In this document: positions 1,974-35,493 of the stretch, one piece after another
Position numbering within the stretch: the first letter of the stretch is position 1
Layout: the number at the start of each line of letters is the position of its first letter
Assembly: GCA_964057225.1 (NCBI GenBank)
Contig: OZ059899.1
Span: 7,750,001 to 7,814,000, forward strand
From: Auanema rhodensis
Taxonomy: Eukaryota; Animalia; Nematoda
Reading direction: 5' to 3'
Length of the DNA: 64,000 bases
Position numbers and translations under genes: made by a program
The notes under the pieces: generated by a model
Told to the model about the DNA's origin: nothing
The model's input: the letters and a program-made list of their open reading frames with translations, nothing else
The model's database searches: none

Positions 1974-4200
<2,227 letters not shown>

Positions 4201-4641
4201 GGCTTAATCTTTTTAATCAAAACCATGTTAAGCATAACTTAAATTAAATAATTGATGAAGCGTACAACTAATTGAAAAACCATACGAATTTGAAATACCC
4301 ATGTTTATCGTTCATAACAATGAAATTTAATGTCTTACAAGCATTAGGCAACGAGATATGCAGAAAGATATAAGGAGAGATCTCACTAAAGTAAGGAAAC
4401 AACAAATCATTTGTTTGTGTAATCCTACACGCAGTCAACATTAATGAAAACTAAAAGTAAGAAAACCGGAACAAAGACTGAGGCTATCTGATACATGTAA
4501 TACCTTGAATTATTAATAATGACAAAATTGTTGATATAAAATCACATAAAGTTGAATATATATGTGTAAAGTGGAAGCGAATTCCAATAATGCACGTTTC
4601 TTCATGACCAAGGCGAGCAAGAAACAAATAAGAAAGCATTT

Positions 4642-6540
4642 TTACAAATCATCTTCGTCATCCGGAAGTGGAGCATTAATTGCTTCCGAGAGTAGCTTAT
4701 TATTTTTTTCAGAAGATAATGATGATTCTCCTAGTTCAACGTCCTGCATCTCAGAATTTGATTCTGTGACATCATCAGTTGACTTTTCTTCACTTCCAGT
4801 GGAAGATTTGGTATCCATAGACTCTTCTTGATCACATTGCTAAAGTATATATAAAATATTTTTTTCTTTTTAATTTCTTACTTGTATACTAGAAGGTTCA
4901 CTAATTTCGTCAGGGTCTCTAATGCTTTTTTGGTCATCAGAGTCCAAACTAGTACGGCGCATATAGTCAGCATCAAATATGAAAGGCTTTTTTGAAGGAT
5001 TCAAGGGGCTAGGACTTATCGAAATCCTATAAGAGCAAAATCTGATTGAATTATGTTAAATCATGATAGTATATCACTTACAGATGAGGCTGAACAAACT
5101 CCTGAGGTTGTTGTGAGGTAGAAGGATAAGGAAATGTACTGTCTGTGACTAAAGGTGAGGTGCTATTACGAACAAAAGTTCGTTTTGGGTCGGATTCTTC
5201 ACTTGTACCATTAGTATACCTTCTCTTTATGGTACGTGTTGTGATGGGAGATAAACTTCTACAACTATTGATTATAAACTTTTTTTTTTAATTTTCAACC
5301 TTAACAGCCGATGTCTTGTAGGACTTTGTGTGGGACTAGGATTCGGTGAATAAGGTATATTCGGCCTCACCATTTGTTGGGTTGAGGGAGAATAACATTG
5401 CTATAAACAAAATGTGTAAGAATAAATCGTTGAATAAATGAAATTTTAGAAACCTTGTGAGCGTCTGGTAGCCTGGTAGGACTGGGAGAGCAACTATGAG
5501 GAAGAAAGGAATTAGTAACTATGGTTATAGGTTCTCCAACTGAAGTAGTAGATGGAGTACGTTTCCGCAAATCCTGAAGTAACTATGTAAAAAATTTTAA
5601 GCTTAATAAAATCAACTTTCTGATTTTGATCTATCACAAACTCATCAAATCCTGTTGAAACTTGCTGAGATACTTTCATTAAGCGCTCATGAGCCACCTA
5701 AACTAATTGATAAACTGAAATTTCGATATATGGGGGCACCTCCGATTCGATGGCGCTCTCTCTGCGAATATGTGCTATGCGACCTCTAGGAGCATCTGCT
5801 CCTCTTCCAGGGACAATTACAGGCTCATCAAATCCCTAAGAAATTTAGCAATTTTTCAATACTTCAATAAATGCAATACCTTTGTCCTACTATTCTTTCG
5901 TGAACTGGAATCTTCACCGTCTATAGATTCACCACCAGCAGTTATACCACTACCTTCAGAACTATCTGAGTCGGAAGAATTTTTCCTTTTTCTTGACCTA
6001 CAAAACAAAAACAATAGAAATTTGATCAATGCATTAAAATCACCTAAACATGCTCTTTGAAAAACTGATACCATCCATGGACGATCGAGATGAAGTTTCG
6101 GAATCGGGCATTGATGCTTTAAAGAAACGATAAGAGCCATATATCATACACTAGTGCTTACTATTCAAACCTTCTGGTCTAGGAAATAATGAATAAGAAT
6201 TAGAAGGGGAAGCTTGGCTAGCAGAAAGAAACCTAAGAATGAATTAAGATAGGTTTTTTTGAAATAATGTTCAAAAAAAAAACGCACGGTGATTGTCGGC
6301 TGTTTGATCCGATATCTACAGGTTCTTGCTCGCTCAGAATGGAGCAGTTCGATGGAGCAGGACTACATCCTACCGAAGCTCCTTCTTTATCTAATAAAGC
6401 TGAAAATATAATCTAGTCTAATAACAAAGTTTTTATAAACCTGAATGTTCGGAAATTGAAGGTGATGGAGCAGGGGGTAATATAATAGTCGTTGTTGAAC
6501 CACCGGCACAAATACTACTATCTTTGGACATCTCAGTCAT
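4642..6540 (-). CDS. FAM122A/PABIR-like disordered Ser/Pro-rich PP2A-B55 inhibitor
   Basis: Spliced peptide GRIAHIRRESAIESE|VAHERLMKVSQQVS..SPSPTR..KQCYSPSTQ..SPTQSPTR..LRSLSPI parallels the FAM122A blocks RLHQIKQEE..HERE..SPSPTR..KQCFSPS..RSQSPI (recognised from memory). Confidence 0.75.
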
Positions 6541-7008
6541 CTTATTGTACAAACGTCAAATCATGATTTATACCTATAAAATACATAATACTTTAATTCT
6601 AATATATGAAAAAAAAACAGACAAAGAAAAACACGTGACTAATTAAGGTTCAAACATAATTCACAGATGATAGTTTCTAATTTTAGAATTTCTCACCCGT
6701 TATAATAATGATAAGGGTTTTTAGAGTAAGTAATTGACTGAAAATAAAAGGCAATATAGAACGATGATTGAAAAGGATCACCTTTCCACCAAGGCTCGGA
6801 GTGCGTGTGTTGGATTGAGCTGCGCTCCAATCACACTACTCATCAAGTGTAGTTTACTCTAAATAGTAAGCCTAACAAAAATTATAAAGATAAATTTTTT
6901 TGATACTACAAGCAATTATAAATTTTAATAAGAGAAAATTAAATCAATAGAGCAAATCGCTAAAAAATTTTATGAAAATATTGCCGTAACTAAGGAATTT
7001 GAGTGTAA

Positions 7009-7343
7009 GTAGGAGGGGCTCCGTAGTGGAGGTACAAGATTACTGGACAAATTCTGTTGAAATGAGATTAAATAGAAAAGTAAGGATGAAAGATGATTCC
7101 TGAAGTTTACCGAATATATACATGCCATAAACGGAAACATAAGCAGCTTTAGTTGATAGTCATGGGACATTGGATTTTACGAAGACCTCAGTAAAGATTA
7201 GTTGAGGCATGAAGCTGATAATCTATTAGCATGCTAACCTCGAAACATGATGCATGTCGGGCTATTGATGTAATGTTCGTTGTTTTTATTATCATATTCT
7301 GTGTTTGTTGAAATTTTTTTCTATCTGCTCATGCCCCTCCTAC
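7009..7343 (-). ncRNA. Candidate structured non-coding RNA (~335 nt), family unassigned
   Basis: Perfect 11-bp terminal complementarity GTAGGAGGGGC (7009-7019) / GCCCCTCCTAC (7333-7343), a second long-range helix ATAGAAAA/TTTTCTAT and several internal hairpins. PSE/TATA-like promoter immediately upstream on the minus strand. No credible ORF. Confidence 0.45.
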
Positions 7344-7392: not shown

Positions 7393-9957
7393 TTTTTAGG
7401 CAAAAGAAAAGGCGGAGGATAGAGCAATGCAAATAGCTGTCAGGTACTTATAGAGCTCTTGCCATTTAAAGGATATAATCGGCTTCGAAAAAGCTATATG
7501 AGCACTTACTTCTCTATAACCCAAAGCGTGCGATCCAGGGGTGAACTTGCAAAATTTGGTTAGTTTTTTTACTCTTCTATTCAGTTTTTTTTGCTTTGAA
7601 AAAGAAAACCCGATAAAGAATGATAGAGAATAATAAATTTTAATCAATGTCATTTGTACTGTAGAGATAATGAATGTATATCATTTTCCTTATAAAGTAT
7701 ATTCATATTGCTAGCGATTATAACAACAATAGTTTGTAGAAAATTCGGAAGTGTTAATGCCAACTCAGTCAGCTGATATTATTTCTGAGAATGTATCAAT
7801 ATAATTTTCTTATGCCACCTTGCTATTAATATAGAGCATATCACAGAACGCTCAGCAATTGATTTCATATATACATCAAAGAATCCGTGTTATAAATATC
7901 GAAAGAAAACTTAAGCACGTATGGAGAAACAATGAAACATCATACGTAGCCATGTTTGACAAATGGCAACTTTCTTTCATGTTTTTCTTTCTCTCCCGGG
8001 GACTATCACGACCCTTCTGTCTTTCAATTTTTCTCTCTCGCGTTGTTAGGCTATCTCATCGTTCTGAATTCAATAAGTCTTCCCAAGGCTGGCTCCTAAG
8101 TAGAATCTGAAAATGCTTTAGGCCATGATTTATGCACCAGAAAGCATCCATTTTGTTTAATCTTTTAGAGACTAACTAACCCTCTGCTAACTAAGCCATT
8201 TTTACATTATCGAAAAGTATGCAAGTTCCACATATTAAATAATTTCTTGCATTCGGAACTAACTTTATTTTATTTCAGTATGTTTGATGAAATATTGACT
8301 TATAGCTTTGACAATTCTTCCTTGCTCTCTTTCGCCCCATCTTGCTTTCACTATATTATTCTTAAAATAAAAAAAGTTTCTAAGCAAACACAAAAAATTG
8401 AAATGAATAAAAGACGTAGCACTATTCCTTATAAATTTTTGATTTTGATGCTATTCCTAGACCAAATGTTGGGAGAATATAAAGCTTCAATTCATAATAG
8501 ATGGCTATAAAACTGCAGAAATATCCACAACGATTTGACTTTTTAGCGTTTTTTTTATAAAGTGCCTTTTTTAAGCTTATTTTCAGTCTTCAAAAATGTT
8601 ATAAATCACAAAAATAACAGAAAATGTTCAACATTTCAAACTTTCAAACTTTTCTTGTTTTTTGTTCGACTAAATAATGAATTAAAACTTTGTTCTAAAT
8701 CTAGACACAAAATAAGAAATGTCACAATCCCAGTTAGTCTTATGAATTGTTTTTCCATTTATTATGAAACAGAAGTGCTAGCTAGAAAACCGAAAAACAC
8801 ATTTCTAAAATGGCAAAGGAATATAGGACAGACAAGGATAAACAAACGGAGCATAGGAAAAGTTTGATAAACAATGTTTCAACACGCTTCTGTATTAGGC
8901 AGCTTTCGTTCAAAATTCCTATCCGAGTGTGCTTGAAAAAATGTTTAAAACATGTAATTTATATCTAATATACATTCTTTTTCCTTTCTATTTTATTTCA
9001 ATGACTCAATTTCGTCAATTTCCTTTGAAATCCTATGCCTAGCTTTTTCCAATATGTATGTGGCATATCATCACTCACAAGCCTTACAACTTTCTATATT
9101 CTCTCTCTGCTTTCATAATCTTGAACTTTACACCCAATAGTTCATTTAAATTTAATTTCATCGGTCATGCTCTATCATAGCTTGGCCCGCCTCTAAGTAT
9201 TTTTTTGATTAAAATGTTATAGGTTGTTCATCTAAAAAATATCAATTGTCTCTTTTTTTCCTCATTTTTTACAACGATTCATTTCCATTCATGCCATTTT
9301 CTCGTTGAAGCTAGTCAAAATATGTAAATTCATTGATTCAACAAAATGAAAAATATCCAATTGATAGCATTTGAAATAATTTAGTTTGTATATTTTTAAC
9401 TAGCAATATTAATACGCTTTCTAGATGATATTAAGCACAAAATAAGAATTCGGATTTCGTTAAACTTAAGTCACTTTCACCAATGCTACTTATATATTAT
9501 GCTAACATAAAAAATAAATGAAGAAAGCACTTGGACTCCACAGAACAAACAAACTTGTTATTAAGAAGTGATATCAAACATGTCTAATAAATTCCAATAA
9601 AAATATTACTATTGCTTTTGTTTTTGATATTGATGTTATGATATATACTAATGTTTATCGAAAACATCTTATCTGGATAGCATTATCCTCGAAATCAATC
9701 TCGATTTAAGTTTTGCAAAAATCTAAGAAAAGTTAAAAATTTTAGTTTTTTGAATACCTCGTTGGATGAAAACTTGAGCATAACGAGCAAATCTTAAACC
9801 ACTGTATTGTTAGAATTTCATTCTCCATTGTTAACTAACGGCAACTAATCATATAAAGTCGGAAAACAGAATGCGAAAATCGTATGAAATGTTGAACTAG
9901 TTTTTTTGTGTTCTATGTCCATCTTCTCATGCTATTAACAGGTGTTATAGATAGCGG

Positions 9958-33200: not shown

Positions 33201-35493
33201 ATTCTAAAAACTTTCATTCCAGAAGGAATTCACTTACAGAAAGGATCTCCGTGAAGAGATTATTTTCACCATTGATCCTCTTACTGCTCGTGATCTTGAT
33301 GATGCTTTGCATATCAAGCCTAAAGAAAACATCGCTGGAACCGGAAAGTCGGGTTGGGAGGTGAATATTTCCATAGTTAGCAATAAAACCATTACTTGTT
33401 TTAGATTGGAGTTCATATTGCTGATGTTACTCATTTCCTTATTGAAAACTCTGAATTAGACAACTGGGCCTCTATGAGAGCTACGAGCACTTATCTTGTA
33501 CATAAAGTAATTCCTATGCTACCCCGTATCTTGTGCGAAGAGTTGTGCTCTTTGAATTCTGGAGTGGATAGACTTGCTTTTTCAGTCATTTGGGAAGTAG
33601 ATGATGATGGAAAAATTCACTCGGAATGGTTCGGTAAGTGGCTGGAAAAATTAAATTTTACGTATTTCTTGGCAAAATGATGTCCTAGTAAAAGGTCTGA
33701 GAATATATGCTCGAATCATATTATACGGTTAGTTAATCATCCAGTGATGATTTTACTACTGAAAAACGATAAGCATTTTAGCCTTAGTTTACTGCTTTTC
33801 GAGTTTAGTGTTTTTCGAATAGTTATGGAGATGGCTTATATAATTATTTTAATAGTTTTTTACCTGTATAATATTTTCCGAACTATATTTGATATGATCA
33901 CACGTTAAAAAAACCTGATTGCCAAAAAAAAAATTAGAATTTAATTGATTTCATTTAATTAGTATTCTCCAAATTGTTTTCAGGAAGATCTATTATCCGT
34001 TCGAAGGTTAAATTGGCATATGAACATGCCCAAGATTTCATTGATAATCCAGAAGGAGAATTAGATTCATCTAAATTCCCCAATGTTTGCGACCATGTAG
34101 AGCTTAATGTTATCAAAACTAAGGTACTTATTTATTCAGAACGTTTAATATGTCGTTATAAAATTAGGTTCTTCAACTGAATTCTATTGCTAAGAAACTC
34201 AGCGCTGCTAGAATAGAAGGTGGTGCTCTTAGACTTGATCAGCCCAAGTTAAAGTTTGCATTGGACGCTGAAGGCAAAAATCCTATCGGTGTTACTGTAT
34301 ACGAGGTGTGCTTTTGTGCCATTAACATTTTTTTAAGCAATGTACTTTAGATCAAGGATTCTAACAGACTTGTTGAGGAGTTCATGTTATTGGCTAACAT
34401 GGCTGTTGCCAAAAAAATAGAATCTGCATATCCACAAGTAGCTTTACTCAGAAGGCATGCATCTCCTAACAAAAAGGTGATGAAAGAAGTGGTGAGAATC
34501 TTATATATTTCTCTCAAAAATTATTTTTGTCAAGCTCGAATTGTGTGAAAAGATTGGCTTCCCTCTGGATGGATCATCGTCTGGAATTTTGTCATCTTCT
34601 CTTAGGAAGTTCCAAGGTGATGATGAAGTTATGACTTCCATCAACCAGGTTTTATCATTGTTAATGATGAAGCCAATGAGATTAGCACAATACTTTTGTA
34701 CGGGCACCAAAGATAGTAGAGAATCTTATCATCATTATGCCTTAAACACTCCATTGTAAGGGAATACTTTCTGAGTATTACTTATACATTATTTTAGTTA
34801 TACACACTTCACCTCTCCCATCAGAAGATATGCTGACGTTATGGTTCACAGATTACTTGCTGCTGCTTTGGAATACTGCCCTCAGCCTGAAAAAAGCATT
34901 CAGGAAGTTGAGAAGATTGCCCAAATTTGCAACGACAAGAAAACTGATGCTAAGGACTGTAGTGATGCCAGTGACGAGATGTTCTTCGGTCTCTTTGTCA
35001 AAGTAGAGTTCTGTTATGGTTCACTTATAAATTTTTCTTCTTCAGGAATGTGGCCCTATTGAAGAGCGTGGAGTAGTAGTTAATGTACTTGATCATGCTT
35101 TTGATGTTCTTGTATTCAAGTATGGCGTGGTAAAGAGAGTTTATGTTAATGTCAGTTACGCATTAAGATTATAAGTGTTTAAATTTTGGCTTTCAGAAGC
35201 TAGATATTGCACGTGACCCAACTCATCGTGAAGGCCCACCACCCACATTAACGTTGTATTGGAATTCTCCATCAGGTTCAGGAAATGCAGCAGTTGAACA
35301 AACTATTCAATTGTGCTCGATCGTTGATGTTGTTCTGTCCGCCTTGCCGGAACCAACGAAATATCAGGTATGAATTATTTACATAATATAACTATATGAT
35401 ATATTAAAGGCTGTAATAAAAATGAAATCAACAAAGGAAACTCCAACTCTTCTTGAGCAATATAATAATCGATCTGGAAATTCACAAAATTAA
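30201..35493 (+). CDS. disl-2: DIS3-like exoribonuclease 2 (RNase II/R family, uridylated-RNA decay)
   Basis: [37 protein letters not shown]; intact catalytic motif [14 protein letters not shown]; VHIADV; [14 protein letters not shown]; [13 protein letters not shown]; HYALN|[13 protein letters not shown]. Long low-complexity N-terminus and no PIN domain. Confidence 0.93.
33669..33925 (+). ncRNA. Intronic box C/D scaRNA-like RNA (U87/U88, SCARNA5/6-like); predicted guide for U5 snRNA Um41
   Basis: Terminal stem TTGGCAA/TTGCCAA; C box ATGATGT at 33677; guide CTAGTAAAAGGT complementary to U5 loop 1 GCCUUUUACUA; D' CTGA at 33697; C'-like ATGATCA near 33894; D CTGA at 33915. Lies in an unusually long 350-nt intron (33634-33983). 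Confidence 0.8.

Follow-up and report, generated by a model that had tools for sequence, protein, structure and literature searches.

A U87/U88-like guide RNA predicted in a DIS3L2 intron of the nematode Auanema rhodensis

A stretch of 64,000 nucleotides (nt) from the nematode Auanema rhodensis (GenBank assembly GCA_964057225.1, contig OZ059899.1, positions 7,750,001 to 7,814,000 of the forward strand), which we call the window, contains a gene for the exonuclease DIS3L2 and, within one of its introns, an element with the parts of a box C/D guide RNA. We read this element as the nematode orthologue of the vertebrate guide RNAs SCARNA5 and SCARNA6 (U87 and U88), that is, as an intron-encoded box C/D guide with a single working guide, and we give this reading a probability of roughly 0.78. 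A preliminary description, made from the sequence alone, had proposed a U87/U88-like guide for position Um41 of U5 small nuclear RNA (snRNA). That proposal is now supported by the invariant guide of homologues in other nematodes, by a guide for U4 A65 in relatives of the window copy, and by SCARNA6 being the best, if sub-threshold, match in Rfam.

The element occupies 257 nt of the + strand (33669-33925), and its parts follow one another as stem, a single A, box C, guide, box D', insert, box C', spacer, box D and stem.

33669-33675, + strand: 5' strand of the terminal stem, UUGGCAA, the perfect 7-base-pair (bp) complement of 33919-33925
33677-33683, + strand: box C, AUGAUGU, aligned with its counterparts in all homologues and in the Rfam SCARNA6 consensus
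33684-33696, + strand: D' guide CCUAGUAAAAGGU (as DNA, CCTAGTAAAAGGT), 13 nt, antisense to U5 snRNA loop 1 through pairing with GCCUUUUACUA
33697-33700, + strand: box D', CUGA, an invariant alignment column
33701-33893, + strand: internal domain of 193 nt, at the position of the H/ACA domain in U87/U88
33701-33707 and 33884-33890, + strand: closing stem of the insert, GAATATA and TATATTT, as read from the sequence
33735-33752, + strand: 5' hairpin of the insert, AATCATC-cagt-GATGATT, with flanks ATGCT (33707-33711) and AGCAT (33772-33776)
33894-33900, + strand: box C', AUGAUCA, a variant of UGAUGA whose fifth letter is C; TGATCA is invariant in the alignment, and the SCARNA6 consensus has UGAUCU there
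33901-33914, + strand: spacer CACGUUAAAAAAAC, 14 nt, upstream of box D, read as the remnant of a decayed U4-A65 guide
33915-33918, + strand: box D, CUGA, near the 3' end and adjoining the stem
33919-33925, + strand: 3' strand of the terminal stem, UUGCCAA, pairing with 33669-33675

The window copy has, in other words, C and D boxes, a terminal stem and internal D' and C' boxes, and in the predicted fold D' and C' are brought together by the closing helix of the insert. The host gene is a DIS3L2 orthologue. Its upstream exon, when translated, shares 75-80% identity with nematode DIS3-like exonuclease 2 proteins (79% with protein P0151 and 75% with that of Pristionchus pacificus), and the matched proteins carry OB_Dis3, RNB and Dis3l2_C_term domains.

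33405-33633, + strand: upstream host exon, coding for RNB domain of DIS3L2, with ends taken from RNA contigs
33634-33983, + strand: the 350-nt intron (GT..AG) of the DIS3L2-like gene that hosts the element, skipped exactly by spliced RNA contigs of three runs
33984-34121, + strand: downstream host exon, the RNB domain being encoded by the exons that flank the intron

RNA contigs from three RNA-like runs join 33633 exactly to 33984, and therefore the intron is real and the host gene is expressed on the + strand. Three neighbouring introns, which are also spanned by RNA contigs, measure 44, 44 and 45 nt, so that the guide-bearing intron is about eight times as long as its neighbours; no other long intron was found in the host gene, where a tblastn search with the closest full-length relative gave no other long gap. 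These contigs bear out the earlier remark that a 350-nt intron lies among short ones, and the terminal stem, boxes, guide and insert hairpins that had been described for it were all found at the coordinates given for them.

The guide next to box D' is predicted to act on the invariant loop 1 of U5 and to bring about 2'-O-methylation at the equivalent of U41. We evaluated the pairing against the human loop, GmCCUUmU-Psi-ACm-Psi, where Psi is pseudouridine (PMC7960923). The guide CCUAGUAAAAGGU pairs over 11 bp, one of them G.U, with GCCUUUUACUA, and the U41 equivalent lies opposite the fifth guide nucleotide upstream of D', as with the D' guide of U87/U88; the placing of the methyl site at U41 by the D+5 rule, proposed beforehand, is borne out by this pairing. 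Furthermore, the window guide together with its box, CCUAGUAAAAGGU-CUGA, is identical to the Rfam consensus UaGUAAAAGGUCUGA, and the 5' end of U87/U88 that had been quoted in the preliminary description agrees with the 5' end of the SCARNA6 consensus, UGAUGAaUaGUAAAAGGUCUGA.

Short boxes, and the many weak stems that arise in AT-rich sequence, could in principle come together by chance in an intron, or an intronic structure could serve only the splicing of its host; moreover, the element as a whole folds only modestly better than its shuffled versions (z = -1.7). We scanned both strands of the window for pairs of RTGATGN and CTGA motifs separated by 55-320 nt and flanked by a stem of 5 bp or more. 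In these 128 kb of searched strand the scan returned the element at 33669-33925 alone, and for stems of 7 bp or more the number of candidates expected by chance is 0.08 (100 dinucleotide shuffles). The motif AGTAAAAGGNCTGA, with at most one mismatch allowed, was found once in the window against 0.06 expected, and adjoins a CUGA: this sole match occupies the D'-guide slot of the sole C/D candidate. The joint expectation of the two scans is far below 0.01, and the same order of parts, the invariant guide and covarying stems recur among relatives, so that a chance assembly is effectively refuted by the comparative data and its probability is negligible.

Those relatives were sought by fetching nematode DIS3L2 loci with the host protein. 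Nine homologues were found in five other clade V species, each of them in a DIS3L2 intron and on the coding strand, and with the window's species the element is present at DIS3L2 in six species of five nematode genera. Where a locus holds two copies they are named A and B (coordinates are those of each fetched locus).

Pristionchus fissidentatus (L004): copy A, 6055-6314; copy B, 4163-4425
Pristionchus entomophagus (L005): copy A, 8128-8374; copy B, 3110-3389
Necator americanus (L006): copy A, 5111-5372; copy B, 2082-2362
Ancylostoma caninum (L007): copy A, 4313-4576; copy B, 1413-1687
Diploscapter pachys (L009): one copy, 6901-7178

Protein searches found no close relative of the window's species. 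The nine homologues are 247-281 nt long, keep the order of parts unchanged and have inserts of 191-221 nt. The sequence AGUAAAAGGU-CUGA is invariant in the seven copies with a U5 guide (the window included) plus Diploscapter, and box C' is (A/G)UGAUCA in the U5-guide copies and AUGAUCU in both Pristionchus B copies. Terminal stems were compared among the ten copies in a fixed register, with a 2-nt spacer before UGAUG and none after box D. Although the stems differ in sequence, pairing at positions 1-5 is kept in 47 of the 50 cells, and positions 2-5 show compensatory changes (AT/GC, CG/TA/TG, AT/GC and AT/GC/TA pairs), exchanges that amount to covariation. The alignment of orthologous DIS3L2 introns that the preliminary description had put forward shows conserved boxes and guide and covarying terminal stems; the C. 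elegans disl-2 gene has no such element. Another DIS3L2 intron of A. caninum (L007:3864-3921) gave a weak box C/D match, to snoR28 (25 bits, E 0.17), which may be due to chance or may mark an extra small nucleolar RNA (snoRNA) in this host gene.

Several relatives carry a second guide, upstream of box D. In both hookworm B copies this is CGAAGUUUUCAAU-CUGA, and in Diploscapter and both Pristionchus B copies it is CAAGUUUUCAAU-CUGA; the hookworm B and Diploscapter guides have the form (C/A)AAGUUUUCAAU-CUGA. The shared AAGUUUUCAAU pairs with nt 61-71 of human U4 and places A65 at the fifth position (U4 sequence from PMC13253345). In human, U4 Am65 has been assigned to scaRNA5 (U87) only and U5 Um41 to scaRNA5/6 (PMC7960923), and U87 has also been given as the guide for U5 position 41 (PMC5733568). 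Relatives of the window copy carry guides for U5 U41 and U4 A65, and the ancestral nematode RNA therefore would have had the two targets of human U87. The two guides are distributed unevenly: the hookworm B copies and Diploscapter keep both, the hookworm A and Pristionchus A copies have the U5 guide only, and the Pristionchus B copies have the U4 guide only, with D' guides that differ between the two species. In the window's gene there is a single copy with the U5 guide only. As observations on the C box, the dual-guide copies have the variant AUGAAGA (L006:2089-2095, L007:1421-1427 and, approximately, L009:6911-6917), a non-consensus form kept across genera, and the Pristionchus B copies have AUGACGA.

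The window spacer CACGUUAAAAAAAC has no complementarity to U4, and no U4-A65 guide is found in this copy. Written as CACACGUU-AAAAAAAC, the spacer aligns with Diploscapter CACAAGUUUUCAAU, and it also aligns with the SCARNA6 consensus gAcgUUUUCAAG, of which only ACGUU-type letters remain; among U5-only copies the box-D spacer is not conserved. The second guide of the window copy is a decayed U4-A65 guide. This is the guide for which the preliminary description had identified no target, and an origin can now be assigned to it. The core of a U4-A65 guide, TTTTCAAT-CTGA, does occur once elsewhere in the window (21942, - strand), in a GC-richer and probably coding stretch, and we took this match as chance because no C' box precedes it.

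The window insert folds at -41.4 kcal/mol against -30.7 +/- 3.8 for shuffled sequences (z = -2.8, 0 of 200 as good), and a long closing helix of about 27 nt per strand, irregular and formed by 33701-33728 and 33864-33890, is kept in both the minimum free energy and the centroid structures. Inside it lie the short hairpin at 33735-33752, a hinge, and a longer 3' hairpin with its core at 33798-33819. Between species pairs of relatives whose inserts are 56-66% identical, 7-12 compensatory pairs were counted against 0-1 broken ones, which leans towards the predicted fold. The window insert could not be aligned to the Pristionchus inserts, and only Diploscapter gives a partly convincing alignment with it. 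The domain is read as a degenerate H/ACA relic which would now mainly serve to juxtapose D' and C'. It stands where the H/ACA domain stands in human U87 (nt 27-183; PMC3884663), and in the hookworm copies an ACA, aligned to the ACA of the SCARNA6 model, directly follows the 3' hairpin; these two points agree with the degenerate H/ACA module first suggested for the insert, and the window copy itself has no ACA triplet.

Could the insert still be a working H/ACA module, so that the RNA is a true composite guide which binds dyskerin through a variant box (for example AUA for ACA) and directs pseudouridylation? The outline of hairpin, hinge and hairpin, about 130 nt inside the closing helix, would suit such a module, as would the ACA retained right after the hookworm 3' hairpin, and in the alignment window UUAUAUAA stands opposite Diploscapter CUAACACUU. 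The window insert, however, has no ACA triplet and no convincing ANANNA hinge (H box) could be placed in it; it has small internal loops, and no complementarity to a target came to light. The lack of ACA is only mildly informative because about two ACA triplets are expected from composition. A still active composite guide is unlikely on this evidence. The hairpin loops of the window insert, CAGU and UUUAGUGUUU, contain no clean UGAG (Cajal body, or CAB, box), a motif present in the 3' hairpin loop of both A. caninum copies.

Within the insert, positions 33744-33762 hold a perfect GUGAUGA, 8 nt and a CUGA, and form one strand of a 7-bp hairpin; the intervening UUUUACUA mimics the U5 loop. This mimic is conserved in no relative. 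It is complementary to the guide, and we considered and rejected it as an internal guide decoy (shuffle P 0.05; nothing comparable in the nine other copies). Weak Rfam matches to SNORD31 and sR14 at 33737-33788 come from the GUGAUGA...CUGA letters of the same 5' hairpin, and were taken as chance.

The loss of one of two ancestral guides, together with the missing ACA box and a box C whose last position is U, raises the question whether the window copy is itself a decaying paralogue, a relic that no longer assembles or guides while another RNA elsewhere does the job. All four boxes, the perfect 7-bp terminal stem and the 11-bp guide are nevertheless intact, and the insert still folds significantly well. 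Furthermore, a gene with other introns of 44-45 nt would hardly have retained 300 useless nt, and U5-only copies in the same state have been kept in Pristionchus and in hookworms. We therefore hold a relic to be quite improbable, and prefer an RNA that retains a single working guide.

The descent of this RNA from the same ancestor as U87/U88 has to be weighed against convergence, in which a nematode C/D RNA would have gained a U5-loop guide and a long insert independently and would resemble U87/U88 through shared targets. At gathering thresholds, Rfam finds nothing in the whole window. Under permissive settings SCARNA6 (RF00478) was in every case the match with the lowest E-value. The window copy scores 12.6 bits (E 0.11), over the 5' module only; A. 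caninum A scores 22.6 bits (E 0.0012) over its full length, model positions 1-265, in an alignment that takes in the 3' hairpin, the UGAG-bearing loop and the ACA box; A. caninum B scores 22.4 bits (E ~0.001), and Diploscapter 22.8 bits (E 1e-4), over both guide modules. The covariance search suggested in the preliminary description has thus given SCARNA6 as top match, with the window copy short of the gathering score of 68 bits.

Several points weigh against an orthologue of SCARNA5/6, and the first of them speak for convergence. All of the SCARNA6 scores, 12.6-22.8 bits, are far below 68 bits, and therefore do not amount to SCARNA6 membership by Rfam's rule. They are owed largely to guide and box letters, where most of the aligned identities fall and which are constrained by the target, and the window insert is both unalignable to the Pristionchus inserts and devoid of an H or ACA box. 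In addition, the methylation of U5 loop 1 in nematodes is a prediction; the window's box C ends in U and not in A, and its box C' is non-consensus; and the four RNA-like runs are assembled mRNA contigs, which prove the splice and cannot show a small excised intronic RNA. Finally, the DIS3L2 loci of C. elegans, Mesorhabditis spiculigera, Toxocara canis, Bursaphelenchus xylophilus and one further relative yielded no such element, which is therefore dispensable at this locus in some lineages. Against convergence stand five independent traits: the U5-U41 guide at D' as in U87/U88, the U4-A65 guide at D in relatives, an internal domain of about 190-220 nt placed precisely between D' and C', a C' box of the shared and unusual form UGAUC-N, and the hookworm 3' hairpin followed at once by ACA, with UGAG-type loops. 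Their coincidence makes common descent preferable to convergence; on the sequences compared, descent shared with U87/U88 is probably the better reading, and independent origin is rather improbable.

An orthologue of this kind would be expected to follow the route of other intronic guides. After splicing of the DIS3L2 pre-mRNA the intron would be debranched and trimmed by exonucleases, and trimming would halt at a core particle of Snu13, Nop56, Nop58 and fibrillarin assembled on the C/D kink-turn, which the 7-bp terminal stem would hold together. The closing helix of the 193-nt domain would set D' beside C' and so make a second protein-binding site. There the D' guide would pair over 11 bp with U5 loop 1, and fibrillarin would methylate the 2'-OH of the nucleotide that faces guide position five and corresponds to human U41. 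In the window copy the guide at box D, directed at U4 A65 in relatives and in human U87, would have decayed, and the internal domain, if it descends from the H/ACA domain of a composite ancestor, is probably only a scaffold or a protein-binding module.

Within DIS3L2 the copies occupy at least four different introns (in P0151 residue numbering). The window intron lies after about residue 840, where Pristionchus has no intron; the intron of Pristionchus A lies after residue 856, where the window has none. Hookworm A and Diploscapter copies lie near residue 980, where the window has a short intron only, and the hookworm B and Pristionchus B copies lie in the poorly conserved region 425-560. These non-homologous positions point to intron sliding or to intragenic relocation of the element. 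The introns compared were window 33634-33983 with L004 6022-6371, and window ~34495-34540; the window and Pristionchus sites are 16 codons apart. The distance from the end of the element to the 3' splice site is 58 nt in the window and 65 nt in Diploscapter; for the A copies of P. fissidentatus and P. entomophagus it is 57 and 63 nt, respectively. These values lie within the usual range for intronic C/D RNAs. In Necator A, with an exon start at 5552, it would be about 179 nt.

DIS3L2 is the exonuclease that clears faulty small nuclear RNAs. A functional tie, in which the supply of a guide for snRNA modification is coupled to the expression of an enzyme of snRNA surveillance, is a doubtful proposition. 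On this reading a U87-type guide for U5, and ancestrally for U4, would have stayed in DIS3L2 throughout rhabditine evolution, moving or duplicating among at least four introns and splitting its two guides between copies. In human, SCARNA5 and SCARNA6 both lie in introns of ATG16L1, and ATG16L1 (chromosome 2q37) is within ~1 Mb of DIS3L2. This proximity may be a coincidence or the trace of an old linkage between the guide RNA and DIS3L2. SCARNA5, SCARNA6 and ATG16L1 have been placed at one locus (PMC3778004).

As an addition to the known guides the element itself is unsurprising; with it, the U87/U88 (SCARNA5/6) family would extend to nematodes. The presence in nematodes of the dual U5-U41 and U4-A65 arrangement with a large internal domain implies that this arrangement is older than vertebrates, and it probably dates to the bilaterian ancestor. 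Within one host gene the copies would form a natural series of duplication, subfunctionalisation of guides and decay of the H/ACA domain. They also provide an annotation for an otherwise unexplained long intron, and a handle on the role of U5 loop 1 methylation in an animal with a small genome. We found no published nematode orthologue of U87/U88, within an incomplete coverage of the literature.

Among known systems, ordinary intronic C/D snoRNAs resemble the element in having C/D and C'/D' boxes and a terminal stem, in following the fifth-nucleotide rule and in being released from a spliced intron in which they lie about 60 nt upstream of the 3' splice site. They are, however, 70-120 nt long and mostly target ribosomal RNA, and only a few nt separate their D' and C' boxes; in the window element this interval is 193 nt and the predicted target is an snRNA. 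A possible C. elegans counterpart is CeN128, a box C/D RNA predicted to guide U5 snRNA methylation (He et al., PMC1474057, Fig. 2a). The original annotation of CeN128 was as H/ACA, and depletion of C/D core proteins lowers its level (PMC2442092); this history would fit a long, composite-type RNA, although the C. elegans disl-2 gene itself lacks such an element. U85 (SCARNA10) is a composite C/D-H/ACA guide of the same overall topology and acts on the same U5 loop (Cm45 and Psi46; PMC5733568, PMC7960923), but in another register and with an active H/ACA pocket, and the window guide puts U41, not C45, at the fifth position. From SCARNA5/6 the window copy differs in its host, DIS3L2, and in having neither a U4 guide nor a recognisable H or ACA box. 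The two share several traits: an intronic location, a box C with (U)AGUAAAAGGU-CUGA after it as the guide for U5 Um41, and a long structured domain that separates D' from a C' box of the form UGAUC-N. Furthermore, relatives of the window copy have the U4 A65 guide at box D, as U87 does, and in hookworms and Pristionchus, as with SCARNA5 and SCARNA6, there are two paralogues per host gene.

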